Part shown: one piece after another, positions 4,957 to 56,566 of the stretch
Numbering within the stretch: the first letter of the stretch is position 1
How the letters are laid out: the number at the start of each line of letters is the position of its first letter
Assembly (NCBI GenBank): GCA_002269645.1
Contig: NIVC01001355.1
Span: 205,882-269,881 of the forward strand
DNA from: Macrostomum lignano
Lineage: Eukaryota
Length of the DNA: 64,000 nucleotides
Reading direction: 5' to 3'
The notes under the pieces: generated by a model
What the model was told of the DNA's origin: nothing
The model's database searches: none
What the model saw: only the letters and a program-made list of their open reading frames with translations
Program-made: the position numbers and the translations under genes

Positions 4957-6204
4957 CCGGAGTTGCGACCGCGTCTTCTCTTGATCCTCGAATTGCGACA
5001 TCCCTCTCATCATCAAGGACGTCTCCCCCGGTCGACTGCATCAATCATCGAGGCTAAAAATCATCAACTGCAATCATCTACAAAGACTGCGACGACATCA
5101 TCCCAAAGCCTACAGCTGCGAAGCACCAAAGCCGATTCGGTCACTGTGGATTACCTGGTCTCCGGCTGTTAATTTTCTGATTGGTTGGGTGAGAGGGAGG
5201 CTACCTAGACTTGCGTGATCGGGTGATTCCTTAATTATCTGTCCCCTATTTCAGTAGTAGCTGGATCAAGTGCACACTTGCTCATTGTTCAGTAGTGCTG
5301 TGTAACTTGAGGCGAAATCATTCAATAATACTGTTAGTAGTCTATACTGCGAATAAATCTGAACTAAGTGGGAAGTGTGAAGTAAGAAGGTTCAATCCGA
5401 CAATTATTCGCCGATGGCTCAAATGAGGAGTTATTAAGCTACATGTATATGTAGTAGGCGCTGGTCACAGTGGACCAATGGCAAGCGCAGTTCTCAGTCA
5501 ATAAATTTATCTATCAGTTAGCGAAATTGCCAATAGTGCAAAATCGGTGCAAGAGATGTACACTCTAAAATCGCCAAGCGGCTCGGATATAGTGAATCAT
5601 GCGTTCTCTGAAGTTCGAGTTAGTCTATCATCAGGGCTACGAGAGGCTGGTTGGCGCGTTGAAGGCCAAAAGTACAATCTCTCTTATTTAGCAATGTAAT
5701 AGTACATACAGTATGTAGCTACACCTTAGACTCGCCACCGCAAGAATCCCCTGCACAAGTCCCCTCTGTCCCAGCATGACCAATGCGATATATAGCTAGC
5801 AGTGTCCCTTATCATCGGCTATGACTTCGAGATTGACAGCAAAAAGACACTAGTTGGCAGGTAAGTGCAAGCCCCTTTTAGTCGGAATTGCCCGATTTCG
5901 AAAGTTCCGGTTTGGTGAGCTGGTGCGTATATACGGGCTGCTGGCAGCGGGTTAGTTAATCTGCGCGGATTTGCTTATCTCTAACCTTCAAAATTCTCCC
6001 TGCGCCTTGGGTCTCGATTGACTCGCTGTCCCTCTCTTACGTACGTAACTATATAGCACCCAGACTGCTCGACACAGACCAAAACTTCCTTTGGGGCTGA
6101 CCATCTGACAGGAGTGAGGGGACGACAGGGCTCTAATTGATTCATTTCTGAGACCTGAGGCCCAATTGAGGCTTTTAACGCCGGAAAGGCCGAAACCCAT
6201 CATA
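4957..6204 (+). repeat. Unclassified ~1.25-kb interspersed repeat, copy 1
   Basis: Collinear with the reverse complement of 8178-9373. Shared blocks include CAGCTGCGAAGCAC, TGGTCACAGTGGACCAATGGCAAG, GGCGCGTTGAAGGCCAAAAGTAC and CAGTGTCCCTTATCATCGGCTATGACTTCGAGATTGACAGCAAAAAG..CACTAGTTGGCAGGTAAGTGCAA. Confidence 0.85.
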
Positions 6205-7559
6205 AAATTAAAATTGGACCGATTCAGCATGGTTAATCATACGAGCGAATGAATTTATTTACAAAGTTTTCGAAGTTAAATTAGTTTTGGCCTAAAAATA
6301 CATGAGATTGAATAATTTAAACAAACCATTCAACCTAAGTTTGCGCGAATTGAAAATTCGTTGGCGATCAGTATTTATTACCGATAAGAATTTGTAGCTT
6401 AAGTACATGTATCAAGTGAAATAATGCGATATACATAAATGATTAAAAATCTATGAAACAGTCGATCCGGGTGCGACCATGCATGTACATGTACATGTAC
6501 ATGTATTTGCAATTTATCTGGACTGCATTCATAATTCTAAATTAATAATTCATAATTCAAAATAAATTCAATTGCATTCATGCAGTTAGCGCATACGATA
6601 GGATTTAGCAAAAACCTTATATAGTCGAACCTTAACATCCAGTCTCTATTACATGTACTCGTATCACTCAAGGACAACTGAAGGAAGTTGTCCTTGGTAT
6701 CACTCAGATTTTGGTCTGTTGCGGTCCCGTTGCGGTCCCGTTGCGGTCCGTTGCGGTCCCGTTACGGTCCATTGCGGTCCGTTGCGGTCCGTTGCGGTCC
6801 GTTGCGGTGTTTACACGGACCCTTTTACAGTAATGTAAAAGGGATCTAGGGGGTTAAGACAGCTACCCCAACATGACTAACCTAGCCTTGTTTTCGCTAT
6901 ACTAAAATGGTTTATTCTATTCTTCTTAGGCCCTATCATATAGGGGTCAGAGTCAGACAAGCGACATTTAGTTGGGTGTAAATTATTGTGAATATTTTTG
7001 GGCGTGATTAGGCCTAGCGATTGTGATCTAATTTTTTTTAATTCGATAACAATTAGGCCTATTTGAATAAGTACACACAAAAACTAAACTAAACCAATAC
7101 TAGAATAAGATAGTTTGATATTGGCTATCGCCTATCGGGTTCAAATGTAGCCAGTTTTAACTATCTAGATCTGATTTTGAGATCAACTACACGCTAACTT
7201 GGGTTTTAAATTTATGTATAGTTGTCGTACAAAAAAGGCAAAATTATTTACGCGGTAGGTAACTGGTATGAAAAGTCACTTCTGGAAATAGCCAAATACA
7301 AGTAATTAGCACTTGATTTTTTTAGTTTAGATTTTACAGAAATTTGTTTAAGTTTCACGAAGTTTTTATGTATCGAGAACTTTCTACATGTATTTCAAGC
7401 CAATCTTGGCTAAATTTTTACGTCTTATACACCCAAATTCCCGCGACACTAGTGTTGGAGGGGATCTTGTACCTAACATGCGAAAAAACACCTTGTAAAA
7501 ATTTCAGCAATGACCGATAAAAAGAAGTCTCCTGGGTCGTTCTATACGATACATCTACT

Positions 7560-8092
7560 TTTTACCCCCCCCCTCACTTTCGTTATACGATCCCCGATAG
7601 CATGAAACAATGCTCTCCATACTGTAAGGGGATCGTAAAACGAAAGTGAGGGGGTGTCAGGCGGGCATCGAACAGAGTCGTATTAACTATCTTTACTTCA
7701 TATACAATTAGTAGCCTACGATACCTAAATTTCACTTTTGATATACGATCCCCTGCAAACAAATTTCCGACTTGAGGGATCATATTACGAAATTGATGAA
7801 AAGCCTTAAGTTTCGTTATCCGATCCCTTTCCATACACTTCCTCCATTTAAATGATCGTATAACGAAAGTGAATATAGGAGGGCTCCTATACTACTCTTG
7901 CGAAGACTCTTGTCCAGGCTTTGTTTGATTGCCTTCAAAATAGACAGCTTTTGAAACTGCCTTAGTGCAGTGACTTTGACTCTTTGATGGATACGTTTCC
8001 AGTCCTTTGGTGTCTATATTCTTTCACTGCGTCTTTTACACGGGGATCGTATAACGAAAGTGATTAGGAATGGGGATCGTAAAACGAAAGAA
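7560..8092. mobile_element. MITE-like element with arrays of GGGATCGTATAACGAAAGTG motifs in inverted orientation
   Basis: Motif at ~7574 (reverse), ~7628, ~7810 (reverse), ~7855, ~8042 and ~8072. No TSD established. Confidence 0.5.
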
Positions 8093-8177
8093 TGCCTATT
8101 TTTTCCTGTCCCTGCCATTTTGCATAGCCATAGATCTAGCTAGGCGCTAGGCCCTAGGGCTAGGCTAGGGCTAGGTC

Positions 8178-9373
8178 TATGACTGGTTTCGACCTTCCGG
8201 CCCCCTTGTGGGGAAGCCTTCGGGCCTCAGGTCTCAGAAATAAATCAATTAGAGTCCTGGCCCCCACTCCTGTCAGATGGTCAGCCCCATGGTAGCTTGA
8301 TCGTGTGGCGAGCAGCCTAGGTCCTATAGCTAAGAGAGGGACAGCGAGAGACGAGCAGGGAGAATTTTGAAAGTAGCTAATCCGCAGATCAACTAACTTG
8401 CTGCCACCAGCCCGTGCGCCCTGGCTCACCACACCGGGACTCTCGAAATCGGGCTTCCGACTAGAGGGGGCTTTGCACTTACCTGCCAACTAGTGCCTTT
8501 TTGCTGTCAATCTCGAAGTCATAGCCGATGATAAGGGACACTGCTGGGACTAGATCGCATTGGCCATGCAGGTACAGAGGGGACTTGTGCAGGGGATTCT
8601 TGCAGTGGCGAGACTATGGGGTAGCTACATGTACTATTACATTGCTAAATACGAAGATATGTACTTTTGGCCTTCAACGCGCCAACTAGCCTCTCATAGC
8701 GCTGATGACTAACTCGAACTTCAGAGACCTCGCATGATTCTTTACCCGAGCCGCTTGGCTAACCTAGAGTGCACAAAGTACATCTCGGCGCCAATTCTGC
8801 ACTTCTGGCAGTTTCGCTAACTGATTTGATAGATTGATCGACTGAGAACTGCCTTGCCATTGGTCCACTGTGACCGGCGCCTACTAGCTTAGCTACTCAT
8901 CTGAGCCATCGGCGAACAAAGAAATAAAACCGATAAAAATAACTGTCAGGTTTAACCTTCTCCTCAGATCACTTCACACTTCAGATTGAATTGGAGTTTT
9001 AGACTACTAGCAGTATTATTGAATGACTTCTGCCTCAGCAACAGCACTACTGAACAAAGTGAGCAAAAGTGTGCGCCTAATCCAGCTACTGAAACAGGGG
9101 ACAGATAAGGAATCACCCAATCAAGCAAGTCTAGGTAGCCTCTCACCCAACCAATCAGAAACTCAACAGCCGGAGACCAGGCAATCCACAGTGACCGAAT
9201 CGGCTTAGTGCTTCGCAGCTGTAGACTCGGGATGATGCTGACACAACCTTCGCAGATAGCTAGCAGGTGATGTCTTAACTTTGATGTTCGCTGCTGGTGA
9301 CCGGGGGACTCGTCCTTGATGATAAGGGGGGAAGTCGCAATCTGGGGATCAAGAAACGACGGTCGCGCTCCGG
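8178..9373 (-). repeat. Unclassified ~1.2-kb interspersed repeat, copy 2 (inverted relative to copy 1)
   Basis: Reverse complement aligns block by block with 4957-6204. Indels are not multiples of 3, so it appears non-coding. Confidence 0.85.
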
Positions 9374-9483
9374 GATGTCTCAAGCTAGGCTAAGGTCCCA
9401 GGAGGTTGAGGTCCGAGCGGGCCAAAAACACCGGTTTAAATAGCCGCCAACTAGACCGCAGTTTGTTATAATGGAACACGTCG

Positions 9484-9570: not shown

Positions 9571-10824
9571 GAGATCCTATCAGTTCCCACAGGGTCGTAA
9601 AAAGATGACAGGTGCGGCCATAAATCAATCAAAATCGCAACAAAATGATTTATGAATTTTCGCGTAGGATTGACAGAAATTAATGAAAAAATATACATTA
9701 GAAAGCTCTTATTAAATAGAAAGTGAAGATAATGAAGAGAAATCACTAATCGCTAATCCCAAAGTACTTTTAGGGGTAAAAAGCATAGCTGTCAAAGCTG
9801 TCACACGCTTGAGTGAACACGAACAATAGGCTCTGACCTCATAAATCTTGATGGCCTGTCAAAATGATGAGAAAAAAGCTACCTCCCGCATCCTCTCAGA
9901 CCATCTGGCACCCGCCTCAACACTGAGTGAGGCGCAGGTGGCTGTCAGACCAGCTTCGAAAGCGATGATTTATGACCCAAAAAGCTGCGCCTATGTTATT
10001 ATGACTACTAGTATGGCCAGACATTATATCTAGTATAGATTCTATGAAAATTCGCAGAAAAAGAATAAAAATGCCCTTAGCCTGCTGTCAGTAGGCTAGT
10101 AAGTTTAGAGCCCATGTGCTAGCGCGGGATTTGGAAAAAAGTGCGTCCTCATCATCTAGTTGAAAGCTTAGCTAGCCTTTTAAATATAAACTAGGTTTTA
10201 GGTCTACCTGGTACACACAACCTAACTTGTCCTGGGCTGGGACAATACTTAATAGGCCTACTAGGCCTAGCAGAGGCCAGGCTGGCCAGGGCCATGGCCA
10301 TTAGCCAGGGCCCAGGGCCAGGGGCAATTCAATACAGTAGAAATAAATTTAAAAAGCTTCGTTTGTGAAATTTCGATTAAATCGAATTTCTTATTATAAT
10401 TAAAACATAAGCACAAAGAATTAATTTAGAAACAATCATTGGGCTAAGAGTCTTCTCAATTGTCTGCCCATGTCATGATGAAACATGTATGTGCAACATG
10501 CAACATGCTGGAGCTAGAGCTTACCTAATTTTCTTTTAAACCTCGTGGTTGCTTTCGTCAAATTTCAAAAACATTTTTAAGCAGAATAATATTATTTATT
10601 ATTTATTAGAAAAATACATTAAAAAATAAGTCATAAGTGCATTTTTTTATATCGCTGAAGCGATCTGAAATTGTTTTACTCAGCAAGTAGGCGTATACTG
10701 TCAAGAACAACACTATTTTTAACTTTGTTGTACTGACTTTTTAATATGGCTTTCCATGAGTGTTGACGAATTGCAAGCGTAAATGATATCTACGTTTCTT
10801 TCTATACTTTACTTTACTTTACGT

Positions 10825-10950: not shown

Positions 10951-12126
10951 TACTAGAAAGCTACTTTCTTGATGATTATAATGAATGATTTTAATATTGT
11001 TTCTTGGTTCTTCCTTTGAATGATCACAAAATATATATTTGATTTGGCTCATTAATCCCGTAGCCGTAGCGTAGCTTTAATTTTAGATAACTGTGTATAG
11101 TTATAGTAGTTCTTGTCGATCGAAATTCCATAGGCTAAACTCGTAAAACCTTGGATTTTTCTAGAGTGGAGCTTCTAAAATTTCAAGTTTGTTGGACTTG
11201 GCAGTAGACTCGATAGCGTAGACAACGGGCAATCGTTTAATTTGTCTAGGCCGTCCATTTACATTAATAGAATATGGTACACTTTACCCTGTTAGAGTTT
11301 TAGCTAAAAATATTTTATCTACATATATTAAGTTTTGAATCATGCTAAAGCCTCGAGTTTGCTGTGCCAACACAAAGGCAAGAAATTATCGACTTATAAA
11401 ATTTATGCTTAAATATAAAAAACAGCACGTTACCTCAGATTAGAACTTTGCAATCTTTCGAAGTTTAAATAAGCTCGTGTTATGCATTTAAAGAATAAAT
11501 TCTGGGATCAATGACCCCAGCCTATGCTTTCATATTTCATAGGGCTATTTAATTTTGATGTCGGCCAGTCATCTTCAAACGGCACTTGATTGAAATAGTC
11601 CAACGTGATGGGAAGATAATTTTGTTCAAGCTGAAACTTTCCAAACTACTCCTAGGAAAATGAGATGGTCTAACATGTTTATTAAATGCTGGTTAACTAG
11701 CTGTTTTTTAGACTATTATTTGAATTTAATTTGATTATGCCGTACGAGCTATTTACATTGACTATAGAAAAGCTTTGACTGCTCATCTTTAATAAACAAT
11801 TAAATGTAGGAATTTCTGCTTCACAGTTTCTATTGATTGGCATGTTAAAAAAAGCAGTCATGACACTCAAAGGTGCTAAATTTTCTCTCGGATGAGACAG
11901 GCGTTGAAGAATAGCTAAAAAAGCAGCCCCTTCCATTTCCCAACAATTCTGAGCGCGCTTGGAGCCTTGGACCAATGGGCGATGATCCTTAATTATGATT
12001 GCCCACCCCTAGACGCCCACCTCCTCCCTCTATGTATGACAGCGACCAATGCTGCAGGGACACACGCCGCTCCACCCCCAAGACAAACTCAGTAGAGATT
12101 TTATAAAAGCAGATTTTTCTCTTCAA

Positions 12127-12323: not shown

Positions 12324-12349
12324 GTGAGTGATCATACTGATTGTGGCAG

Positions 12350-12430
12350 GACAGACAGAATGACCGACAGACAGACAGACAGACACTAAGACAGACAGAC
12401 AGACAGACAGACACACAGACACACAGACAC

Positions 12431-12497
<67 letters not shown>

Positions 12498-13569: not shown

Positions 13570-15964
13570 ATGACTACGTCCATGAATCGAACTCAGGACC
13601 TTTTGGAGTACGTAGACTCACTAATCAAGATTTAATATGATTTCGGTACGAGTACAGTTGTTGATCCAGTATGCACGAAAGCCTCACAGCGTTTTAAATA
13701 CCTGCCAATCTCAATCACAATCCCAGAGAATTCCCAGACGACGAGTGCCTGATAGTCAGGGCGTCTCCAGACCGCAGTGTCTGGGCTGTCGGCCTGGCCA
13801 GCGGCCGGGTGCAGCTGCTCCGGGCTGCCGCCGACGCCGCTACAGTTGTCCAGACTCTATTCGACGCCGTCAGCCAGGAGAAGCAGGCCGTCACTGGGCT
13901 GGTCTTTCTTCCAACTGAACTGTCGCTAAAGAAGAGTCCGGGCAGCCTGCTGATTGCCAGCTACGCGACAGGACAGATCCGCTTTTGGCGCTACACAACT
14001 GCAGCCAGCCAGCAGCAGCCGTCGCCTCCCCAGCTGCTCTGGACTCTCACCGAGGAGCGAAGTGTCGAGAGCGTCGGCGTCTCCGGCGGCGGCGGCGGTA
14101 GCAAGAACAATCAGATCCTCTGCCTGGCCTGCTCTGCCGACGGCCAGCGATTCCTTACAGGCGGGGCCGACGGCGGGATTCGGGTCTACGACACTCGACG
14201 TCGAGGCCTAAGCAATCTGTGCCAGGCGGGCAGCCTCACGGCTGGCCGGGTGGACGGTCACCGTGGCCGAGTCTGCGCCTTGGCCTACCATCCTCAGGGC
14301 AGGCGCCGGCCGGCCGAGTTCGGTCACCTGTTCGTGTCCGGCGGCTGGGACAACACTGTCCAGATTTGGGACGACCGTCGGCAGCGCAGCCTGTGGGTGT
14401 ACTTTGGTCCTCACGTGTGCGGCTCGGACGCTATCGATGTTGACCCGGCGCAGGGCCATATTCTCACTGGCAGCTGGGAGCGGCACAAATCCATGCTGCA
14501 GGTGATTGTCTTCAATGTTCCATTTACATGTACCAAGCTCAAAACTGTAGAATAATCGAAAAGTTATGAAGAAGACCGATTCACTCCCAAGTTGACTTTG
14601 AATTTTTATAGTTAGGCCTCTTCTCAATGAACGCACACCTGTAATCGGGCTGCAGGTGTGGAAATTCAACGAAGACGCGGCACACGGCCGGCTCGATTTG
14701 GACGACAAATCGGTGCAGGAGGACATGCTGCGCGGCCGGCCGCTGGGCGAGCTGCAGCAGGACCCTACTGGGACGCCGTCAATGGGCTACGTAGCCCAGT
14801 GGCTGGGCACTCAGTACATGGTCTTCGCTGGCAGCAACGCCAATGCACTGAAAATTGTGGACAGGAGCACGCTAAACGTACGTTGATGCATCCATCTTGA
14901 GGCCCTAAAATGATTTCACAAACTGAAGCGGAAGGGTAGCAGAAGTAGAAAATTAAAAGGACGCGACACCTGTATCTCCAGAAAATTTTTCGTAGGTGCG
15001 TTTTCTATTCTAAAAAATCTACTAGCGAGATAAACAAAAGTCAATTTTTGGAGCCTATAGGTTTACAACTTCAAGTTTCAGAGTAAAAAATACGTCGTCG
15101 ATTCAGAGACACCACAAGCCCAAATTTCAGAGTTCATTCAAAGTTTACACGAAGATGCTAACCTGGAGTTACGAATTTCATTATATATGGAATAAGTTTG
15201 AATTATCATGGGTCCAAATATTCTCGCAAGCATGCACGAGTACATTGTAGACGGACTCAGTATTTTCCATGATCTAGCTGATTCGTTGCATGCGAACAAA
15301 AGCCTTTGTTGCGACCACATTCAAATATTTATGACACTACACGGCGCTATAAAAGCTATAAACACGGTATACTCGTATCCGGCAAAATTAACTTGAAAAC
15401 GTGCGCACGAGTGGCTTTCAATGGGACCTTCTTTGCCACGTCAGAGCTTGAGTTGGAATTTATTGCAGATCTGCACGAGAAGAAAAATGGTAGCTGTGGG
15501 TTGCAAACTATACCGGGTACCTTGCACCTGTGCTTAAACTCACTGTATCAGAGAGCTGTATTGACAAGTTGTAAAATAATAAAATTACTTCCTAGGTAGC
15601 TAGGCACTCTAAATGATTGGAGTATGCTAAAGTGTAGTGACAGTGCCAAAATCTGTACGCACGGTGCTACTGCCACCACACGGCACTAGCTATTGATAAA
15701 TGTATCTACGTTTAAAAATGTTACTTATAGCGTTTAACGTAATTAACCACCGAACGCAAACACCTGCAGATCGTAGCCGGTATTGTGAGCCTACCAAAAG
15801 GCGTCTATTCTCTGGCTTCTCTGCCGCAGGATTCTTCTAGCACTGGCCCAGCTTCCGGCTCCATCGCTGGCGGCTCAAGCATTGGAGAAAGCAGGCGACT
15901 GGCTCACCGACTCGCCTTCTGCGCGGGAAATCGCCTCTACGTGATGAAGTTCGAACGTAAATGA
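13570..15964 (+). CDS. WD40-repeat (beta-propeller) protein, ~409 aa if the first exon is right
   Basis: Exons 13570-13607 (tentative, MTTSMNRTQDLLE), 13727-14501, 14656-14877 and 15770-15964, all GT-AG and in frame. WD motifs include ILCLACSADGQRFLTGGADGGIRVYD, GHRGRVCALAYHP..LFVSGGWDNTVQIWD and GPHVCGSDAIDVDP..HILTGSW. Ends LYVMKFERK*. Confidence 0.85.
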
Positions 15965-18262: not shown

Positions 18263-19106
18263 GCGACACCCGGGCACACCAGACAGGGGAGGCGCAAAGC
18301 CTCAGTCCACCGCCAACCAGCCTTAACCCTCTGGAGCCGAGACTTCCCGAGACTGACATTCACATCAGTGCAAGCAAGACAATAAATAATAAAACCACAC
18401 TACTGAGGTACAGAAAGCAAAGATACAGTATGATATTCCAATACTATAAGTACGAGCTCTGTAACCAGGTACAACAATGGCCGACGCTAAGATAACCTAA
18501 GGCACTGAATACATGCATGTAGCAGATTATTCTATTAACATCGAGAGGTTGGTCTCGACATTGAACTCCAAACTTCAAGGTTCGATTGAGAACACGAGTG
18601 CAGTTCTGAACTGATTTTCACCCAGAAGAAGGGAGTGAGCTTATAGTTTTCTCTGAATAATTCCTTGCCATCGCCATGCGCTGCTGCATTTCAGAGCATT
18701 TTTATCGCGACTCACAAGTGAGGGCTGCTCTAAAGTAGCTGCCCCATGGGGGAAGCAATCAACTCGCACTATTTACCTGTAATGTTTCTCTCGTTACCCT
18801 TGGTAACCAATCAGCCTCTATCTCAATTAATTATTCAATCCGTGACCAAGAGACAGAGGGACAGCGCAATCAAAAGTCGCTCTATGAATTATTGATGCCA
18901 GGCTGACCACAGGCGACAGTACTTGGAGAATAGGATTTCGGGATAATTAACCTTGTCGGCCGGGATGCTCAGCAACTTTTATAAAGCCAACCAAACTCAA
19001 GCGCTCCCGACCGCAGCTACAATTTGAGTAGTTCATCGTCAAGACTTCGCTCTGCTCAAGCTTTGCCTGAACTTCTCCAGTGATCTCCAGTCGCTAAAGC
19101 GCACTG

Positions 19107-38813
<19,707 letters not shown>

Positions 38814-39704
38814 AGGCGGTTGTGCAGATTACCACCGGAAGAGTTTGAAATTGGTGGCTTTTTTTGAAGCCAATTCAACTAACGCTCTGGGATTTTCATT
38901 GTTTTTGTAGACTCTACAGAGCAATAACTCGCAATCAGAGTAGTAAATTCCTATCGTTAATTAAAACTAAAATAAATATATGCCACTATAAATTGTTACG
39001 AACTAAAGCACCACTTGATATAATGGCTAACTGCAATAAAGATTTAGTTCTGAACTTTCTTTGTACTACACTTGTACTACATGATGGCGAAAAGCCGTCT
39101 TTTATATCGTTGTTTCTTTTCATTTTCAATTGTCGTACGTACAACGGTGTATGCCGTACGCTACACTCTCTGCCCAACATTATTCATGACTCATTCTCTC
39201 GCCTAAACTTGTTTACCAATTTTTGACCAATCATGCATCGCTTCACCCTCGCATCCAATATCGACTAATAAATTTATTGAGCAAACAAAGCCACCTTACC
39301 AAACACCTGACGAATGACAGCTCAGTACTGGTTGGACAGACCTGGAAGGGTCTAATTGGTGTTTCAAGTAGTGATTGACTAGGTGTCGGGCTGATGCTCT
39401 TAACTGCTGCTGCTATGGCTTGCTAAGTGAATCGATTCATTCAGTAAGAGTTCCAGTCCAATCTTGTATAAATGGGCTGGATCACGGCTGACAAAAAAAG
39501 AAGACAACTCCTAAAGACCGCGTCTTAAAATAAGCAGGAACCAAGTTGTTTATTACAACCAAGTTTACACACACCTGGTATAACTGAAAATGCCTCATCA
39601 GGTTTGAGATTTTTAAAATGGCACAAAATCACAAATTTTGCTACACGTACCCAAGGCGACGTCACCGTTGCTATGGGGGTAGTTATAATGAAAAATAGTC
39701 AAAC

Positions 39705-42589: not shown

Positions 42590-43483
42590 CTGGAATAGCA
42601 GGGTTTGAATTGTATTGTATGAGAGCCAGTAAAATGTTGCATCGGTTTAACCTTTCTATACGAGTTCGTAGCTATACATTCAACGTCCTACTTAAGTGCT
42701 GACTATTTTAGCTAAGGCATTGAGTTGAGATCAGTTACAATTAAGTAATGCGCTGCAACATTTTTTGATTTTTGTTGTTGATAAACAAATGTCCTAATTT
42801 TAGTGGCTAAGCTATACGATCAAATATTAAATAAACATATAAGTTGCAGAGCATAAACATTGATTCCATATTCACGCAAAACATTTCCTACAAACGACAT
42901 CATCTGCTTACTGCCTTAAAGAAAATAAGCTAAGCATCAAAATATTTTTAAGTTGATAGAAGTTTGAATGTCTGAGAGATATTCCTAAAAACCTTTGTGA
43001 ACATAAAATGCGAGCTATTTGAGTAGCACATGGACTCTGCAAAGTAAAACATATAAATACGAGCGTACATGCAAGTCTACTATCGAGTTACATGATCGAG
43101 TTACAGAGTCGATCACTTTCTTAAACTTGATTATGGAATCAACAATGAATCTACGAGCTATATCTAGATATTGTGTGCAGAGCTACTTTTTTCTGTCTCG
43201 CTTTTCACAAGAGTGGCTCCAACACGGTCAATTTTTGAGCCTCAAGAATTAAGAGTTAAGACTTCCTGTCATCCCAACGGATTCTACATTGCCCTTCTCC
43301 AATTATCCATCAAACGAAGCTTTTTCAACAAGCTTATTGATTTGACTGATTTAAATTGGTGCCAATTTATTTCCGGTGATTACTTTGCATTTGCTATGTT
43401 GTTTGCTTGTTGCGATTTAGGGTATTCACTTCTCATTCTCATTGAATCTCAGTTGCATTAAAATGCAGCAAGCGTTAGACACT

Positions 43484-44035: not shown

Positions 44036-46285
44036 ATGCACTACGGTACCAATACCATGCAAAAATCGTGGCGTGGCCTATTTTCTCTTAATGACGGTTG
44101 ACAACTCGTGAAAAGAGTACTTCTACAAAAACTCATCTACTCGACCGTGCATGGGTGACAGCTACAGTACATTTTATTCTTGGAGCACATATTTTAATGT
44201 ATTACCTACTTTTTACCCGATTCGCTCGTAAGCTGACGCTTTACAGAGAAAGTGAGTACCTCCTGAATTCAGCACTAAATCAATTTAATTACCTCACCTT
44301 CTGGACTTCCAATAGCAAATTAAGCAAGTATACGTTTGGTCCATGGCGCATTCACAAGGTTGCCAATTAGTTGAAAGGTTAAAAATGCCAGAAATGAAAC
44401 CGGCCGGACTAAAAGTATAATTTGGGCAAATTATGTCTCTTACGAAGTATATTGTGAGTAATTATTCTAATAAGACTTTTTTAGACTGACAAGTATAGCT
44501 ATTCGCGGTCAAGACTGTCTGGGGTAGAGCCTTTTTTATGAAGCACAATTTTTGCTATGTACTGATGCACATTAACCATGGCCTTGGACCACAGACAGCG
44601 GAAGTTAAACGTACTCTACGAGCTACATGCAGCTCGATTCACTACATTTACGAGCTTACTATCGGGTAAAACTTCGAGAATCCGTCCAAAAAGGATGCTC
44701 AGAAATACAGGCAATTTTTTTGTTTTAATTTTGCCTTAAATTTTCTACAAGCATTCTGTCCCCAGCATATTCAAAAACCGTCGATAAAAAAGCAATGCCT
44801 GAGAATTGCCGCGAGACAGGCCGAAGCATGCATATGTCTGCGTCTAGTACTGACTTCGATGGATATCTAGCTGCAAGATAGTTGACATTAATAAATTGGT
44901 AACTAATCTTGGTTTACATGGCGAATAAGAAAGAAATCTTAAAAACTTTGATCGGATTAATACTTGGCTTCCTCGTAAATTCACACTTCCTCAAATTGAG
45001 TTGGAGCAAATAAGTATAACTGTTCACGATTAATTTGAACTTCTGGACTTCTTTAAGCAAATGAGGAGAAAAGGTGAAAAGCTTATCCATCTATACTAAA
45101 CAAAGAAAGGGCCGTCAGACCAAAAGTTTCCCGATAGAGCAGCAGGTCAAGAATAATGCATCCTCGCCCAACCAATCAGAACTTCAAGCTGCCGCGGTGT
45201 GACCATGCAGGAAGTTCACCGCAGTGACCGAGAAAACCAGGCAGGGTGCTGCCGCTATTCTTAGACGATGAATGCTGTTTGCTTCTGTTTGTCGATGATT
45301 ATATCTGATATCTGGGGAGTCTTAGTCGCTGACTCGATATACATGTATGACGAGGGGCCGGCAGCCCTTTTTTCGTATGAAGGGGAGGAAATGAGAGTTG
45401 CGAGCGGGTCGGCAACGTTAGTGGCCGTGAGCAGGACAGGTCAGAATCCTTAGTAGTCCTTAAGGCTTCTCCGTCCAAAAAGTATAAGAGCTATTGCCCT
45501 TGTATTGCCCGCCAATATTTTTCTTCTTCTTCCCGACGCGCCATAAGAAATAATCATAAAATCAATAAAAACGAGATAAAAGCAGACTAAGGACAAAGTT
45601 ACTTATTATTTTTTATTGAATTTCAGTGTTATACAATCTACTGGTGTTCATTTATTCGTTTGGATTTGCACAATCGTATCATGATGAATGTGCCATATTG
45701 TTTAATATACGAGTACACTGCACTTTATGCCGACGGATCAAATGATACTAAAATCCGTTTTCTTGGCACGCGAAGGTGTATTCAGCACGCCAGTGAAGTA
45801 TGAGACAGACTAGGCCTATGGGCTACGGTCTGCGATGCTTCACCCCTGCCCCTATCTTTGGCAGGTCAAGGCTGGTGGGAGGTCTGCACCCTCTATTTGC
45901 CTCTGGCAGCCGCAGACCCCCCCCCACGCTGTCTCGCAAGTCGACCCAGGGTACTCGTCCCCGCGTGTGTTCAAGGCAGACCCTAGGGCTGCTGGACAGA
46001 CTGGGCTCCGGCGCTGGCGACCCTATCCAGTGGCTTCGGCCGAATTTGGGTATGCGGGTCTGGCTCGCCAACCTGCAGGCCGTAGTACTGCTCAACGTAC
46101 TCTCTAATGCCTAAGGTGTTGACCGTGCCGATGGGCTGGAAGGCCGGGGAGTAGTCCGGTCGCAAGCGGTCCCCCTCCTGGTGTCGGGCCAGCCTTGAGG
46201 GTTCTATTGGCCTACTGCCCGGTCAGGTGGAGCGGCCGGGTGGGTACCGCGCCCCTTTGAGGGTAGCCCACCAACCTTTTATCAT

Positions 46286-47815: not shown

Positions 47816-50800
47816 ATGACTAAGCTCCACGCTGCCAAAGGAGCGACATTCTGTCTGCAAATTAATTTACAGCATTGCGTATCTGCGTCAGTAAATCTGA
47901 TGAAGATTGCTGAGCTGTACAGGCCAGGCCTCATCCTGATCCAGGAACCCTGGATGCGCAACGGTAAGTTGCCAACATTCCCTCTGGCTACTCTGATTTT
48001 TATGTGTGTGGCCCGGGGAACAGCCGCCCTAGAGCGGCTATCCTCGCTGCTAGCCATCTCCAGGCTTGGCTGAGGACTGATCTCTCTGATGGAGACCTTT
48101 GCGTCATCCAATCTAATCATCTCTCTCCGCGTACGTGTCTTGTTGCCTCGGTTTATATCCCAGGCGACAGAGACCCTGCTCCCGAGAGTTTACTGCACCT
48201 TGCGCAGTACTGCGAGTCCCAGAACGCTGAGCTGTGCTTAGGGGGCGACCTCAACGCGCACCACAAGCACTGGGGCAGCAAAGATACCAACACTAGAGGA
48301 GAGGAGCTTCTGGCCCTCATCTCTAACACAAACCTCATGCTCTGCAACCGCGGCAGCACTCCTACCTTTAATAATGGCAGATGGACCGAGGTCCTCGACG
48401 CCACACTCGTTACCCCAAGACTCTTTGACAGAGTTGAGGAGTGGAGAGTCTGGTCTGAGGAGCCCTCCCTGTCTGACCACTGCTTTATCGCCTTTAACAT
48501 CGCGGACACTAAAACCCAGTCTCCGATCACTTGGAGGCGCAATATCCGCAACACTGATTAGGCGGCCTACAAGGCTGCCCTTGATCTGCACCTGCAGGAA
48601 CTCACGGACTTACGTCCGATTGAGACCTGCGAGGATGTGGATCATATGGCTGAGACGCTGACAGGTTGCATTATTGCAGCCTACGAAGCGGCTTGTCCTG
48701 CTCGCGCCTACAAAGGCAAGACCTCGGCGCCGTGGTGGAACCCGGAGCTGGGGAAACTCAGGCGGAAGGCCAAAAGCCTTCATCGCCGTGCCATGAAGAC
48801 CGGAAACCCGGAGGACATGGAGCTTTTCCGGCAAGCCTCCCGCAATTTCAAATCTGAAGTGCGCAAGGCCAAGGAATGTAAGTGGCGCCAATTCTGCTAT
48901 GAATTGGATCAAGACAGACCTACTTCTAGGCTTGTCAAGGCCCTTACAATGGACAAAATGTCCAAATTAGCCATGATCAAAAAAGATGATGGCTCTCTTA
49001 CTAAAGACCCTGAAAAAGTGCTTCAGCATATGCTTAGCACATTCTTCCCGAGGGTACCTACTGCTAGACCGGAGCCCAACCATTCGATGGATGGAGCCAC
49101 CCTAGCGGCGGGCATTGTCACTGAAGACCTAATCGCTCGTGCGGTCAGAACCTTCAAACCCTTCAAATATCCTGGACCTGATGGTATCTACCCTGTTCTC
49201 CTTCGTGAAGCAGCCAAGATACCCTCGTTCCTGAGACTCACCCGCAATCTTATGCGGGCCTCTATCCAGCTGGGATACGTTCCCAAATGCTGGACTGAAG
49301 CTCGGGTAGTCTTTATTCCCAAACCTGGGAAGGGTGACTACCAAAGCGTCAAGGCCTTCCGGCCTATTAGCTTAACGTCAGCAATGCTTAAGCTCACTGA
49401 GAGGCTTATTCTCTGGCGGCTGCTGTCCTGCGAGCTGACAGCGATGCCCCTCAACAATAATCAGCACGCCTTCCGTACCGGGAGGTCGACTGACAGCGCC
49501 CTGCATGCGATTGTCGAGAAGATTGAACGGGCGGTACTGGGTGACGGTTACGCCCTGGCTCTCTTTCTTGACATTGTTGGCGCCTTCGACAACGTTATCT
49601 TTGAAGCGTTTCAGAGGGCCCTTCAAAATCGCAAAGCTCATGCTACCCTCATACGGTGGATCATGTACATGATCTCCAACCGTACGGTCACTGCCCAACT
49701 TCTTGGGCAAACTGCCTCCACCAGAGTCTGTAAGGGTGGACCCCAAGGCGGAGTCCTCACCCCGACGCTCTGGAACCTGGTCATGGACGCTCTTCTGAGT
49801 GACTCCCGACCCGACCCCGTCTTCAAAGTCGGGTATGCTGATGACGTCACGGCCATTGTGGCAGGACCGTCTCCCAGCACGCTCAGGGATCTGATGCAGA
49901 GCTTTATCTGCAAAGCAGAATCCTGGGCCAATGACAATGGTCTGAAACTCTCTGAGCCCAAAACCGTTGCCATTATGTTTACCAGCAGACTACGCTGGAA
50001 CATACGTCCTCTGCAGCTCTACGGCAGAGATATTGCCTTCGTGCACCAGACCAGATGTATCGGGGTCACACTTGACCACCGGCTCAACTGGTCCTTCCAC
50101 GTGAAAGCAAAAGCCAAGCGTGCCTCAGCCATCCTGGCCCAGCTCCGACGAGCACTTGGCACTTCTTGGGGTCTATCCCCAAAGCGGCTTTGGTGGATCT
50201 ACACTTCCGTAGTTAGACCTGCCATTACGTACGCCTCGGTTGTCTGGGTTAGCGCTACCCAGGTCAAAAGCCATGCAGACCTGCTCAACACGATCCAAGG
50301 CAGAGCGTGTAGGCTCATCTGCAACGCCACCAGGTCCACGCCCTTTGCTGGCATGGGGGCCTTCCTTAATCTACCGCCTCTTGACCTCTTCGTCAGGGGT
50401 GAGGCGGCTAGAACGACGCGGCGTCTAATTGATGCCGGCGTCAAATTCATTTACATGAGAGCACCTGCTAAGCGGAACCTTGTCCCGCATAGCGACCTGT
50501 GCCTCAACTTTCTCAACGAGTGTCAGGCCAATCGCGTCTTCACCGATGGCATTGCCTCAACGCTCAACCTGAGACAGCGCTACTCCGTAGCTATCGACTC
50601 GCGCGATAACATCAATGACCAATGGAACCTTGGTAAGCTTCATTGCTACACCGACGTTTCTAAGCAGTCAGCCAACACCGGCTTTGGTGTTGGAATCTTT
50701 CTGAACGGGAGGGTCATCGCTACCCACGCTCAATACACTGGGGTCAACTCCAGTGTTTTCCAAAATGAAGTTCTGGCCATCAGCTCCTGCACTGCAGAGC

Positions 50801-51582
50801 TTCTCGCCACTGGCGTTATTGGCAAGAACATCATTTTCCATTCGGACAGCCAAGCTGCCTTGCACGCCATCAGTGGCTGCAGCACCAACTCTGCTACAGT
50901 CCTCGACTGTATCAAACTCCTCAACGTGTTGGGTTCCGCCAACAAAATTACCCTTAAGTGGGTTCCGGGGCATGTGGGGATCCGAGGAAATGAGCTGGCT
51001 GACACCCTTGCAAAAGTTGGTGCCTCCGGCTCCTCTCTCGGCCCCGAACCTCTTGTCCCGATTCCTGGCTGTGCCATCGACTCGCGCATCAAAGCGTGGA
51101 TCAGGACTCAGCACCGCTCGACTTGGGCGAACCGCACGAACTGCAGGCAATCCAGAGGCGCTGTCCCTCAGCCCTCTCACCAGCTCCGGAAGCTCCTCTT
51201 GCGCCTCTCGCGCAGAGACATCCGGGCTGCCACCATGACCCTCTCTGGTCACGGCTGCTTCTCCAGGCACCAGTACCTGCAGGGCAACGCCACCAACGCC
51301 ACCTGTAGTTTCTGCAACTCAGGTGACGAAACCACTGAGCATTTCGTCAGCATCTGTCCCGCCTTCACGCGGTCCAGACTCACTTACCTCGGGCCACACA
51401 CATATATTACTGAAGCGTGCAAACCCGAAAACTTTAATGAGCTCATGCGCTACCTTCGGGCCACCCGCAGGGCTGAACTCTCCTTTCCAGAGAGCACTAT
51501 AGCTGCTGGCGACACTGGGGGGACCTCCCTGGGCGGCGCCAACCCTCCGTCCATAGCGACGCGTCGGCCGTTCAGGGATTAG
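47816..51582 (+). pseudogene. LINE ORF2: AP endonuclease, reverse transcriptase, RNase H, C-terminal CCHC; one frameshift (~48000) and one TAG (48559-48561)
   Basis: QINLQHC..LILIQEPW; GGDLNAHHKHWGS..TNTRGEEL; PGPDGIYP, FIPKPGK, FRPISLTS, QHAFRTGRST, LFLDIVGAFDN, QGGVLTPTLWNL, YADD; RNase H CYTDVSK..SVFQNEVLAI..SDSQAAL..KWVPGHVGIRGNELAD; CSFC..ETTEHF..CPAF. Confidence 0.95.
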
Positions 51583-51968: not shown

Positions 51969-52226
51969 GGGCCTTTTCATATTGCTTGTTCTGGTTCCAG
52001 AACCAGAACCAATTTGTGAAGTATAACTTTTTGTCTCCATAACTAGAGGAAGATACGTGCGATAAAGTTTTTTTTATTGAATGACAATCGCCAAGAAGAA
52101 AGTAAAAAATTGTGCTAAGTGAGGTTGTTAAGGCAGTCAAACATTCAATAGAATTAAATAGTTATACTGCTGTTTTTCTTGGAAGATCCGAACCGATTCT
52201 GATTCTGGAATTGGTAATATGAAAAA
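51969..52226. repeat. Diverged direct repeat, copy A (partner 56252-56566)
   Basis: TTTTCATATTG.TTGTTCTGGTTC.AGAACCAGA...GTGCTAAGT...ATAGTTATACTGC...GAAGATCC shared in the same order. Confidence 0.8.
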
Positions 52227-52227
52227 C

Positions 52228-54874
52228 TATTCATTTCCCGATTGACATTCAGATTCACATTCAAATTTTAACAAAGCCGCTGTAACTTTTCTTTACTTAA
52301 ACGAAACGCTTTAAAATTTTACAAAAACTTTGACGCAATCAAGAAAAAAAACTACGTAAAATATCTCGGCATTTAAAAATAGACTGTACAAATTATTCAC
52401 ATATAAAGTTTGTTCCTATCTCCTTAGTGTATTATTTTGCAACTCAACAAAACGGCTTAAAATACACGCAGAGCTACGAAACTTTATTTTTCTCTTGACG
52501 CACGCGAGATGCGTTGGCAAGTCAAAAATCAGCACCCTAGCTTAAAGCCTGTACGAGTTATTCACCTGCAAACTGTGTTCCTATCTCCGTAGTGTATTTT
52601 GGGGGTCCAGCTTGACATTCGCTGACAGACACTTCTACTCAACGCAGAGCTACGAAACTTTATTTTTCTCTTGACGCATGCGAGATGCGTTGGCAAGTCA
52701 AAAATCAGCACCCTAGCTTAAAGCCTGTACGAGTTATTCACCTGCAAACTGTGTTCCTATCTCCGTAGTGAATTTTGGGGGTCCAGCTTGACATTCGCTG
52801 ACAGACACTTCTACTCAACGCAGAGCTACGAAACTTTATTTTTCTCTTGACGCATGCGAGATGCGTTGGCAAGTCAAAAATCAGCACCCTAGCTTAAAGC
52901 CTGTACGAGTTATTCACCTGCAAACTGTGTTCCTATCTCCGTAGTGTATTTTGGGGGTCCAGCTTGACATTCGCTGACAGACACTTCTACTCAACGCAGA
53001 GCTACGAAACTTTATTTTTCTCTTGACGCATGCGAGATGCGTTGGCAAATAAAAAATCTGCACCCTAGCTTAAAGCCTGTACGAGTTATTCACCTGCAAA
53101 CTGTGTTCCTATCTCTGTAGTGTATTTTGGGGGTCCAGCTTGACATTCGCTGACAGACACTTCTACTCAACGCAGAGCTACGAAACTTTATTTTTCTCTT
53201 AACGCATGCGAGATGCGTTGGCAAGTCAAAAATCAGCACCCTAGCTTAAAGCCTGTATGAGTTATTCTAGTATTAGAGACTGTACGAGATTACAGTATTT
53301 ACGCTTTCCGCCTCTGTAGTCTGGACAGTGACTAAGATTCAGGGAATTCATCTAATGGGAAACATATGACGGGATAGAAAGTTCACAAATTCGGCTCTGG
53401 TCATAGCTGGGTCACCCACCTGAGCCTTAAAAATAATTTCTGTACGGACCCCCTGCCACACATCCCTTAATGAGCACGCATCGCATCACTTTTACGCTGC
53501 TTAAGTGGGGTCCTCATGATCGGGAGTTGTTTGAGCCATCTGGTGTAGCCCGGAAGTCGAAAACGGGACTCATTGGGAGTCTGCTACACCATGCAGCCAT
53601 GCAGAAGACTTTTTAAACAGTGGATCCTCTTTCTGTGAATGATGAAGAGGTGACCGGACATTTTGTCAACCAGCATTTTGTCAACCGGCAGTTCGTCAAC
53701 CAGACATTACGGCAACTCAGCAAATTGTAGCTGATAATTATATAGCTCTGCACCAGCCAGAGAAGTGGTAATGCGATGTCAAAGAGGATGTGAACTTAAG
53801 CGCGATTTGGATGCCGTGAGTCCAGCAACCAAACCGCTGCGAAATTCTCACTATTCAGACCCAAAATAGACAAGAAAAGTGTAATTGATCTTTCTTCCAC
53901 TCCGGCCGCTTCCGCATGGGATAAATGGGGAAAATGGGGATTTCATGTGAACTTAAGGCTCTGAAATGGAAGTGGTGGCCGATTGAGCTGGTTTCTCTAT
54001 CGGATCTCTCTACTGGACCGACAATGAGAGAAGAATCGTTGAAAACCGATCTCTCTATCATTTGGTCTCCCTGAATGGGATAAATGGGGAAAATAGGGAT
54101 TTCATGTGAACCTAAAGCTCAAAGAATCCAGTATCGGCTGAGGATCGCCCCTTTCACGGAAAACTGACTGCTATTGAGTCAAATACCAGTAGGCTGGCTA
54201 CGCTTTTCCGCTTTTCTGTCGAGTCGGCTAGATGTCATTATCGACAACTGTATTGCCAAATACAACCGCTCGCACATTGGATTCCCTGAATGTTAGTCAC
54301 TGTCCAGACTACAGAGGCGGAAAGCGTAAATACTGTAATCTCGTACAGTCTCTAATACTAGAATAACTCATACAGGCTTTAAGCTAGGGTGCTGATTTTT
54401 GACTTGCCAACGCATCTCGCATGCTTTAAGAGAAAAATAAAGTTTCGTAGCTCTGCGTTGAGTAGAAGTGTCTGTCAGCGAATGTCAAGCTGGACCCCCA
54501 AAATACACTACGGAGATAGGAACACAGTTTGCAGGTGAATAACTCGTACAGGCTTTAAGCTAGGGTGCTGATTTTTGACTTGCCAACGCATCTCGCATGC
54601 GTCAAGAGAAAAATAAAGTTTCGTAGCTCTGCGTGTATTTTAAGCCGTTTTGTTGAGTTGCAAAATAATACACTAAGGAGATAGGAACAAACTTTATATG
54701 TGAATAATTTGTACAGTCTATTTTTAAATGCCGAGATATTTTACGTAGTTTTTTTTCTTGATATTGCGTCAAAGTTTTTGTAAAATTTTAAAGCGTTTCG
54801 TTTAAGTAAAGAAAAGTTACAGCGGCTTTGTTAAAATTTGAATGTGAATCTGAATGTCAATCGGGAAATGAATA
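52228..54874. mobile_element. Foldback-type element: long near-identical inverted arms with 176-bp internal tandem repeats around a ~930-bp spacer
   Basis: Left arm 52228-53347, with the unit recurring at 52468, 52644, 52820, 52996 and 53172. Right arm 54281-54874 is its reverse complement with ~1.6 units. Termini TATTCATTTCCCGATTGAC / GTCAATCGGGAAATGAATA; the terminal TA could be a TA TSD. Confidence 0.88.
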
Positions 54875-56251
54875 AGTATATGAAAAGTGAGGTGGGGGTG
54901 GAGAAGGGACTCTTTCTTGCACGGTTGTTTTGAATTTGCAGACACCAGTGAGGTGGGGCGGATTCCTCGTTTGAATTGCCGCCGGCGTTGAGTTCGCACG
55001 AATAAAACCGGAAAAACGCGCAGACGAATCACAACGAAATTTCTTCTCCTGTTTTACTCCGACAGCCGGGTTCTCAAGTCCGGGGGGAGGGTAGTCGTAA
55101 TCGTAGCGGAGCGGTCGTTAGCGGCGCGGTCGTTCAAAGCGGTGAAACACCGGAGATTTCTGACTCCGAAAATTGATGCGTCGGGTATCTGAACTCGTTA
55201 CTTTCAGTAGGGTAGTTGCTGCCACCACCGTAATTTACGTATTACGGAACGAATAAGTCTCAGAGCTTTCTTTGAGACTGAGAACTTTGGTTATTTTACG
55301 CCCCACGGGCAAATGACTCAAGAGAATACTATGGCCTTGGATTAGTGAATAAATATAGTTAATTTTTTGGAATTTATTAGATTGACTTATTTCGAGCAGG
55401 CTGGATAATAAGATAATTATTACACGACACTACACGGATGAGACGCGGGCCGAGGTCGAAAATGTTTCGACTGGGCTTAAACGAGCAGAAAACTGTAGCA
55501 CTAAATTTAAACGGTAGTAGAAAAATAGTAGAAGGAGCAGTAGCAGAAGCAGGGGGAAGGGTGGGTAGGTAGGTTGGTTTTTGAAACAGTCATGTAATTC
55601 ATCGCTTTAAATAAAGGGGAATGAACAGTCACGCAGTGGGGACAGAGGCTGGGCATGCACAGTGGGAGAGAAAAACACGTAAAAGGGGCGGCTTAAACAC
55701 ATAGAAAAAACAAAATTACGACACACATCCAACTCCGTGTAAGCAGTACACGTTGCAGGTAAAGACAGAAACCAACATCCGGAGTGATGTCACTCCAATG
55801 AAGGGGAAACGCAGCGGTTCGCCATGCACATGCAAAAAATTAAACCTGCCAAATTCCAGTCTTCGCATCTTCGTGGCAACCCGCCTGCCACTAAAGCCTG
55901 TTTGAGTAAGTGCGGTATTTAGAGTAAAAAATAAGTGTACAGGGTACTACGTCCACTCCAACGCAGAATAAAGTTTGCACATCGTCTATGTTATTTAAAC
56001 TATGATATATACATTTCATTTTGCAGAAGTGCTTGCTAAAAGTGAAATAAAAAGGATTTACTACAATCAAAATCAATAGCACTGACAGTGACATTGACAT
56101 TGACAGAGAGTGAGACTGTTGTATCGAATTCTCATTGACAGCTTAGGGCATCAACAAATTGAGGTCGCATTCACCACCAAAGATAGTTTTTTTGCAATCT
56201 TTTTGCTTTTTGTCATTTTGGGCGCCTTTATATCTACCCCTTAAGTCCTAA

Positions 56252-56566
56252 GGCTTTTTCATATTGATTGTTCTGGTTCTAGAACCAGATTAAAGTTGTA
56301 AAGTAGGCCTATAACTTTATGTCTCCTAAACTAGAAGAATACATGCTATACATTTTTAATTACTCATTATTGAATAGGAATAGGGGCCTACTACAAATAC
56401 TATAGAATAGGCCTACAATAAAAAAGTTAAAAGTGTGCTAAGTAAGGCTAGGCCTATTTAGATAGTCAAAAATTCAACAAAGTTAACAAGGCCCACTATA
56501 GTTATACTGCTTTTTTTCTTTGAAGATCCAAACCAATTTTGGTTCTAGAATTAGTAATGTGAAAAG
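56252..56566. repeat. Diverged direct repeat, copy B (AT-shifted, with short insertions)
   Basis: Aligns to 51969-52226 with many C>T/G>A changes and GGCC-containing insertions. Confidence 0.8.

Follow-up and report, generated by a model that had tools for sequence, protein, structure and literature searches.

What process has placed the same short palindromic words at many unrelated TA dinucleotides in one region of a flatworm genome? The region is a 64,000-nucleotide stretch of Macrostomum lignano DNA (assembly GCA_002269645.1, contig NIVC01001355.1, positions 205,882 to 269,881; hereafter the window), and the words are TACATGTA and TAGGCCTA. An earlier note on this DNA had proposed that they are scars left by the turnover of cut-and-paste transposons. 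The evidence presented below points to both words being excision footprints of Tc1/mariner-superfamily transposons, which target TA and move by cut-and-paste, and we assign this explanation a probability of about 0.7. Excision footprints, four-base ones included, are already known, and what is new here is an unusually clear and abundant record of them. In the literature, we found no account of this pattern either for TACATGTA as a footprint or for the transposons of M. lignano.

Enrichment of TA-bounded words

The window contains 15 copies of TACATGTA and 10 copies of TAGGCCTA, both of which are perfect palindromes. Every coordinate agrees with the earlier note, which had listed at least 15 and at least 10 sites where about one of each would be expected by chance. 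An order-3 Markov model predicts 0.65 copies of TACATGTA and 0.51 of TAGGCCTA, and shuffles that preserve dinucleotides average 0.71 copies (never more than 3) and 1.26 copies (never more than 4), respectively. The enrichment survives both backgrounds (expectations of 0.51-1.26), and each word is approximately 20-fold in excess within the window.

Tandem-repeat arrays are numerous in the window and were masked before 8-mers were ranked. In the resulting list for the whole window, TACATGTA is first and TAGGCCTA is third, and the 8-mers ranked between them are other frames of CATGTA. Once overlaps are merged, the two words occupy 13 and 9 loci. Complete T...A flanks are present on 15 of the 22 ACATGT hexamers and on 10 of the 18 AGGCCT hexamers, which indicates that the 8-mer is the unit. 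When the 150 bp on each side of the sites were compared pairwise, likeness was seen only where contexts physically overlap. The sites are therefore not copies of one repeat family, and a single repeat consensus as their source, an outcome that the earlier note had set against its own proposal, is ruled out by these unrelated 300-bp contexts.

The sites are unevenly spread, with seven copies of TACATGTA within 4-8 kb and six copies of TAGGCCTA within 2-10.3 kb. The pile-up at 2-10 kb is gene-poor and full of decayed repeats, and a hot spot of sites at 6150-8250 is without long reading frames. An 18-27-bp motif, (CCCCCT)CACTTTCGTTATACGATCCCC, is present in the hot spot at least five times and in both orientations (7563-7655, 7733-7760, 7850-7871 and 8043-8090), and one hairpin-like pair of about 90 bp carries TACTGTA in its loop. 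These copies look like remnants of small inverted-repeat elements.

An unbiased scan was made over all TA-N4-TA and TA-N3-TA words of the window. Three TA-N4-TA words are outliers: TACATGTA (15 versus 0.8 expected), TAGGCCTA (10 versus 0.6) and TACGAGTA/TACTCGTA (7 versus 0.8). The third word is absent from the list in the earlier note and was found without prior expectation; it occupies seven unrelated contexts, four as TACGAGTA and three as TACTCGTA. The top TA-N3-TA word is TACAGTA/TACTGTA (16 versus 7, approximately 2.3-fold), and TACATA/TATGTA is hardly in excess (28 versus 18-21). Canonical Sleeping Beauty scars are TACAGTA and TACTGTA, and Tc3 most often leaves TACATA or TATGTA (10.1101/659086). 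The description of TACATGTA as a known Tc1 footprint is thus not borne out, given that the commonest published Tc1/Tc3 scars are these two barely enriched words.

Further copies of the region were reached through cluster members of the Na/H exchanger protein; an exon in the window (41356-42435, minus strand) is 99% identical to a Macrostomum lignano Na+/H+ exchanger. One locus reached in this way, L002, matches window positions 29914-52372 with 100% identity, which places the window on contig NIVC01001355.1 of assembly GCA_002269645.1. Over window positions 29.6-56.7 kb, that assembly has two homeologous contigs, L003 and L004, with identities mostly in the range of 97-99.5%. A paralogous exchanger locus is represented by three copies (L001, L005 and L006) that are 96-98.6% mutually identical, and L001 can be aligned with the window in exons only. 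Word counts were repeated in L001/L006 (23 kb) as a second, independent locus, where TACATGTA is found 3-5 times (0.14-0.18 expected) and TACGAGTA/TACTCGTA 5-6 times (0.14 expected). The enrichment of TACGAGTA/TACTCGTA is 9- to 40-fold across the window and this locus, and among the 8-mers of L006, with tandem repeats masked, TACGAGTA ranks first and TACATGTA fifth. The proposal in the earlier note that TACAGTA/TACTGTA is a Sleeping Beauty-type scar stands in part: it agrees with the excess in the window and with one event in L004 (described below), but the word is not enriched in the second locus (1 versus 1.7 expected).

Words resembling the third outlier were also observed. TACGAGCTA occurs five times (0.3 expected) at 11743, 29879 (minus strand), 43152, 44617 and 63532, and TACGAGCGTA occurs twice; both may be ragged variants of the scar with CGAG as its inner bases. 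Pieces of TACGAG, TACATG and CTCGA form mosaics in the segments 43050-43115 and 44600-44670.

Insertions at TA in paralogues and homeologs

Where related copies can be aligned, the words appear as insertions that duplicate TA. For example, copy C of a dispersed repeat reads AAG-TA-TAAC at 52022, and copy D reads AAG-TAGGCCTA-TAAC at 56304; relative to copy C, copy D has this and three more GGCC-containing insertions. In an inverted paralogue pair, arm A (5440) reads AAGCTA-CATGTATATGTA-GTAGG where arm B reads AAGCTA-GTAGG, and elsewhere arm A carries TACATACAGTATGTA (~5703) where arm B carries TACATGTA (8626). All three of these examples had been put forward in the earlier note, and the alignments confirm them.

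More recent events were found in two independent triple alignments, window/L003/L004 and L001/L005/L006, that total about 45 kb. L003 alone reads CTTGA-TACTCGTA-TAATGG where the window and L004 read CTTGA-TA-TAATGG. At another site one TA is present in the window and in L003, and only L004 has CATC-TACTGTA-TACTG. Both events are polarised as insertions because the other two copies keep TA. A three-state site has TA in L006, TACATGTA in L005 and TACTCTACATGTA in L001 (in full, GACAACC-TA-GCAC, GACAATC-TA-CATG-TA-GCAC and GACAATC-TA-CTC-TA-CATG-TA-GCAC). In addition, L006 carries TA-CTCG-TA within (TA)n, with CTCG missing from its homeologs. In five comparisons (52022/56304; 5440; L003; L004; L005/L006), a double TA around the scar stands opposite a single TA in the unscarred allele.

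Insertions and deletions (indels) between copies were tallied where they are well aligned, non-tandem and 3-12 bp in length. Four clear cases and one ambiguous case among approximately 20 have the TA-duplicating form, which a random 5-6-bp insertion would take 1.6% of the time. By our own arithmetic, the binomial probability is about 3e-4, a value into which the identity of the inserted bases is not counted. The earlier note had called for indels between copies to be polarised in search of TA-X-TA insertions; four clear cases have this form, and the L003 and L004 events are polarised as insertions. An unpolarised case and a point change are considered below.

The homeologs share every window site that was open to comparison (32382, 36257, 36279, 45340, 56304, 56408 and 56449), which dates these sites to before the copies diverged by 1-3%. 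A rate check, also by our own arithmetic, gives one CATG event per ~1,600 substitutions of aligned divergence. With eight mutable positions decaying, this rate predicts about five standing copies of TACATGTA per 64 kb, and the 13 loci seen are within threefold of that number.

Candidate donors and the proposed origin of the scars

A miniature inverted-repeat transposable element (MITE) of 461 bp lies at L001:18303-18763, with 40-bp terminal inverted repeats and TA on both sides. It begins with CGAGGGGTGTCCC and ends with GGGACACCCCTCG (CGAGGGG...CCCCTCG), and the four bases at its termini are also those found inside TACGAGTA/TACTCGTA. A copy of TACTCGTA is located 4 bp past its right TA, three of the four other scars of the locus are within about 3 kb, and each of the three copies of the locus carries the MITE. 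The window itself contains a young element (52230-54872) whose inverted repeats, of ~0.5-1.1 kb, are 98.8% identical over the outermost 514 bp and hold 4.6 tandem 176-bp units (52466-53267, 54361-54719). Because the repeats of this element are so nearly identical, and because the CGAG MITE is flanked by TA, we conclude that cut-and-paste elements with a TA target-site duplication (TSD) are present and have recently been active in this genome.

A 23-bp motif (approximately TCTCCGTAGTGTATTTT) from the repeats of the window element is found again in those of an L001 inverted-repeat element (~18990-19490) and might serve one family as a repeat to which its transposase binds. Two large differences between the window and L003 were considered as clean transposable-element insertions and rejected. 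L003 lacks window positions 52223-55892 (3,670 bp), a gap that starts 5-7 bp left of the element, ends ~1 kb past its right end and carries AAA microhomology at the junction; it looks like an excision-associated or microhomology-mediated deletion, not an empty insertion site. Likewise, in L003 the 405 bp at window positions 45457-45861 are deleted and replaced by a 10-bp filler, GTCAAACATA, which removes the TAGGCCTA at 45811.

Donors were sought as TA-flanked inverted repeats starting with CA, GG, CATG, GGCC, CAGT or CACT in the window and the other loci (~110 kb). This search yielded only big inverted repeats, a TTCATT... element and the CGAG MITE. Two candidates were discarded: a 451-bp TA-CACT MITE in L001 is actually an internal repeat pair inside a longer inverted-repeat element, and a 13-bp CATGTACAGTCAC pair (32382/36264), considered as element ends, is a chance match.

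Tc1/mariner excision generates 3' overhangs of transposon-end bases, and the scar consists of the overhang between two TSD copies (PMC3878927). An M. lignano element of this type would insert at TA and double it. At excision, the 3' cut would fall at the junction of the element and TA and the 5' cut a few bases inside, leaving each flank with its own TA and a short 3' overhang of the element's terminal bases, and end joining would then create TA, the terminal bases and TA. By the logic of the published scars, four inner bases would therefore correspond to a four-base overhang. A family that begins with a self-complementary tetramer (CATG, GGCC) would produce perfectly cohesive overhangs, which could be ligated without trimming to give the same 6-bp scar each time; this would account for the two commonest scars being palindromes. 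Overhangs of the non-palindromic CGAG would pair at the outer positions only, and the mismatched heteroduplex would give rise to CGAG or CTCG along with ragged variants. Both orientations of the CGAG scar are present in the window, and in the orientation adopted for each locus the two new events are CTCG.

We consider the chances of a four-base stagger, of the kind that Minos has, with cohesive ends to be slightly below even. A '2+2' product (CA + TG, GG + CC) fits less well than a four-base self-complementary overhang because the expected two-base products are hardly enriched. The proposed donors of TACATGTA and TAGGCCTA, which would belong to families ending in CATG and GGCC, are drawn by analogy. 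Scars may well outnumber elements, since a scar is permanent and one element can excise many times. Tentatively, and with less confidence than in the stagger, we suggest that M. lignano might harbour Tc1/mariner lineages with self-complementary termini (CATG, GGCC) that leave invariant scars, remain at low copy number and hop very frequently in the germ line. Such lineages might have produced scars that exceed elements by more than 10:1, form about one-fifth of small non-tandem insertions and supply the top 8-mers of the genome. If so, a sequence-specific, transposase-driven mutational process would still be running, and a model flatworm would possess naturally very active endogenous transposases.

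Several results weigh against reading the words as excision footprints. No copy of TAGGCCTA is present in the 23 kb of the second locus (0.06 expected), and its distribution is therefore patchier than that of TACATGTA. All rotations of CATGTA are in excess (CATGTACA 19 copies, ATGTACAT 11) and a four-unit run is present, so part of the CATGTA signal is likely to come from slippage, repeated hits or another process. The half-sites TACATG and TAGGCC have no conserved extension beyond them. The earlier note had suggested a TA-targeting element with GG...CC (and CA..TG) ends, but the donor search found no TA-flanked inverted-repeat element with CATG/GGCC (or CA../GG..) ends in ~110 kb, which is far too small a sample of a several-hundred-Mb genome to count as absence of donors. 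There is no transposase among the eight longest frames of the window, the only ones scanned against Pfam, whose matches are to a long interspersed nuclear element (LINE), WD40, the Na/H exchanger and M24. The two triple alignments contain no site with an element in one copy and a scar in another, and no new polymorphic TA-TSD insertions versus 4-5 new scars. The TA/TACATGTA polymorphism between L006 and L005 is unpolarised because the odd copy is the outgroup, and an extra TAGGCCTA in L004, first taken as a candidate insertion, arose from TGGGCCTA by a G-to-A point change. The central claim of the earlier note, that the words are TA-duplicating scars of cut-and-paste turnover, thus draws support from the match of TACGAGTA to a MITE, the fresh homeolog events and the young TA-flanked element, but not from a CATG or GGCC donor.

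The excess of CATGTA rotations could also mean that the words are self-complementary hexamer proto-microsatellites, such that chance CATGTA or GGCCTA units spread by slippage or hairpin-assisted expansion and each 8-mer is a piece, 1.33 units long, of (CATGTA)n or (GGCCTA)n. The (CATGTA)4 run at 6482-6505 and the TAGGCCTAC-TAGGCCTA pair at 10253 agree with this model, and micro- and minisatellites are extremely abundant in the genome. Moreover, alternating purine-pyrimidine 8-mers are enriched approximately 1.7-fold overall (218 versus 128), and palindromic words are in general excess (332 versus ~250 expected). These general excesses are real, yet they are too small to explain two words at ~20-fold, and TACATGTA and CATGTACA far exceed every other alternating 8-mer. 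Tandem Repeats Finder (TRF) reports no array at any TACATGTA or TAGGCCTA site. With an array taken as at least three head-to-tail units that vary in number between copies, only 6482-6505 has as many as four, and 20 loci are single-unit. In the paralogue and homeolog pairs the empty allele is a bare TA, without an earlier unit on which to slip, and the non-palindromic TACGAGTA acts alike and matches a MITE terminus. We therefore regard the proto-microsatellite model as unlikely.

Transposon-independent repair is also given small odds. By this account, breaks at TA are filled by polymerase-theta-type templated synthesis, which yields short palindromic fillers. The same alignments do contain snap-back insertions, which are inverted copies of the flank, as well as filler-bearing deletions, and in two events a like short word lies a few bases off in the flank (CATG for L005, TACTG for L004). 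Three snap-back insertions are present in L006 relative to L001/L005, at about 8314-8330, 9721-9745 and 8700-8735. The inverted flank copies at these places are TCTCTCTCT by GAGAGAGA, CTAATCATTAGA by CTAATG and ACACACAAGGAC opposite GTCCTTGTGTGT. They bear the hallmark of snap-back templated repair, which makes palindromes in this genome by a second route. A complex insertion in L006 holds TACATGTACGAGTA next to a 12-bp inverted copy of the flank. Such fillers should differ with the flank, whereas the inserts at issue (CATG, GGCC, CGAG) are constant over unrelated flanks, and TA is duplicated every time.

Selected cis-regulatory palindromes, which dimeric DNA-binding proteins would bind and selection would maintain or add, are a very unlikely source. 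The two words are perfectly palindromic, two homeologous contigs retain the sites that were tested, and some factors bind CATG-core palindromes, a BEN-domain paper being one example. However, conservation between homeologs that are 97-99.5% identical is uninformative, the sites pile up in the gene-poor, decayed-repeat stretch at 2-10 kb, gain is by a 6-bp insertion and not by point change, and the copies are polymorphic for these indels. It is highly improbable that the words belong to dispersed repeats that went unrecognised, either as termini still in place or as internal segments: although 32382 lies inside a repeat common to L001:7567-7595, 36255-36286 adjoins a repeat also found at 29050-29160 and CATGTACA is carried by a tRNA-derived short interspersed nuclear element (SINE), the 300-bp contexts have no further similarity, and paralogue flanks run on across the site on both sides with only 6 bp added.

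Each of these alternatives covers part of the pattern, but none explains why unrelated sites have one and the same insert together with a doubled TA, and none accounts for a third motif that matches a MITE terminus.

Features of the window and comparison with known systems

Table 1. Positions of the TA-bounded words and associated features (window coordinates; L-numbers denote the other copies)
Feature	Position	Strand	Remarks
TACATGTA then TATGTA	5440..5447		12-bp insertion (CATGTA+TATGTA) at TA versus inverted paralogue at ~8890
TACATGTA	6404..6411		
(CATGTA)4 run	6482..6505		three overlapping TACATGTA at 6486, 6492, 6498; one TA scarred several times, or slippage once two units existed
TACATGTACTCGTA	6650..6663		two tandem scars with common TA: TA-CATG-TA-CTCG-TA
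TACATGTA	7385..7392		
TACATGTA	8626..8633		paralogous position (~5703-5717) is TACATACAGTATGTA
TACATGTA	14525..14532		directly 3' of CAG-GTGAT splice-donor-like site after WD40 exon; putatively intronic
TACATGTA	28512..28519		
TACATGTA	28963..28970		
TACATGTA	32382..32389		kept in homeologs L003, L004; within dispersed repeat also at L001:7567-7595
TGTACATGTACATG	36255..36268		contains TACATGTA at 36257; kept in L003, L004
TACATGTA	36279..36286		kept in L003, L004
TACATGTA	45340..45347		kept in L003, L004
TAGGCCTA	2256..2263		
TAGGCCTA	2722..2729		
TAGGCCTA	7009..7016		
TAGGCCTA	7054..7061		
TAGGCCTAC-TAGGCCTA	10253..10269		two copies 9 bp apart; two units with 1-bp spacer
TAGGCCTA	45811..45818		in L004; gone from L003 through 405-bp deletion with 10-bp filler
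TAGGCCTA	56304..56311		6-bp insertion at TA intact in paralogue (52022-52023); also in L003
TAGGCCTA	56408..56415		within 31-bp stretch missing from paralogue at ~52100; also in L003
TAGGCCTA	56449..56456		paralogue 6 bp shorter here; also in L003
TACGAGTA	1325..1332	+	more at 13647, 19627, 45708 (+)
TACTCGTA	6656, 15370, 19946		
Intact TA	39019..39020		window and L004; L003 has TACTCGTA, copy-specific 6-bp insertion
Intact TA	45092..45093		window and L003; L004 has TACTGTA, copy-specific 5-bp insertion
Arm A, 1.2-kb inverted paralogue pair	4957..6163	+	arm B 8222-9373 (-); 78% identity
Copy C of ~300-bp dispersed repeat	51970..52228	+	copy D 56252-56568
Young non-autonomous cut-and-paste element	52228..54874		element proper 52230-54872; TTCATTTCCCGATTG...CAATCGGGAAATGAA, TA both sides

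Other repeats and genes in the window include a dispersed family of about 400 bp, found at 58801-59164, 35954-36197 (minus strand) and 40171-40315 as well as at L001 93-455 and 12135-12489, with copies that are 76-96% identical. Its tRNA-like head (GGCTCGATTCCAAG box) and its AATAAA with an A-rich tail indicate that it is probably a tRNA-derived SINE. A pure (CTAT)n microsatellite of 2.25 kb (563 units, 99% matches) occupies 20432-22684, and in the interval of 20-34 kb thrombospondin type-1 repeat exons alternate with a near-continuous series of minisatellites that are strongly strand-skewed. An apparently intact retrotransposon without long terminal repeats (non-LTR) lies at 48004-51582 on the plus strand, with an endonuclease frame (48004-48561) and a 981-amino-acid reverse transcriptase (RT) and RNase H frame (48637-51582); its RT frame has a 120-bp deletion in L004 (window 49618-49737). 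At ~61049-62000, also on the plus strand, there is a methionine aminopeptidase 1-like gene with a zf-MYND-like start and an M24 domain. The overlap of two frames of this gene (...VTCYHR / HHGDLNET...) suggests a frameshift of 1 bp, which might be genuine or might stem from an error in the long-read assembly.

Excision scars are usually regarded as rare, ragged by-products, whereas here they are uniform, lead the ranking of 8-mers in two independent loci and constitute a visible share of recent small insertions. If the same is true genome-wide, a census of scars would count past transposition for each family, which copy numbers cannot do, and 6-bp frame-preserving insertions at TA would be a class of mutation relevant to variant calling and subgenome comparison. 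It would also make testable the rule that self-complementary termini lead to invariant scars. Furthermore, it would point to endogenous, possibly still active Tc1-like elements as tools in M. lignano, a species whose transposon tools are so far confined to a piggyBac proof of principle (PMC8717057).

The pattern can be compared with excisions in several known systems. In rice, where closely related genomes have likewise been compared, only 8 of 94 excision sites are clean and most have deletions or fillers, and Mariner insertions exceed excisions by 2-3 to 1 (Roffler and Wicker 2015, PMC4423477). The excision-linked flank deletions of that study resemble the absence of 52223-55892 from L003. 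The M. lignano scars differ in that they are uniform and top the k-mer spectrum, and in the ~45 kb compared there are 4-5 new scars against 0 new TA-TSD insertions. The C. elegans Tc1/Tc3 elements share with the M. lignano pattern the TA target, the staggered cuts and the terminal CA/TG bases between the TAs, but Tc3 leaves two inner bases (TACATA/TATGTA, 28 versus 18-21 here), whereas TACATGTA stands at 15 versus 0.8. For Sleeping Beauty and Frog Prince, which leave TAC(A/T)GTA, the likeness lies in the copy-specific change of TA to TACTGTA in L004 and in the top TA-N3-TA word of the window. Their three-base overhang differs from the four inner bases of the dominant scars here, and their word is only weakly enriched in the window and not in the second locus.

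The third outlier, TACGAGTA/TACTCGTA, corresponds to the scar described for the Tc1-family element Minos of Drosophila hydei. Minos was reportedly found by Arca and colleagues in 1997 to leave four terminal bases between its TA copies by way of a two-mismatch heteroduplex. The likeness noted between Minos and the M. lignano MITE, which starts with CGAGGGG, lies in CGAG and in the form of the scar, where 6 bp are gained and two TAs enclose the four terminal bases CGAG/CTCG. A Minos excision allele with an added 6 bp encodes an extra Thr-Arg (PMC6980720), which is consistent with ACTCGT.

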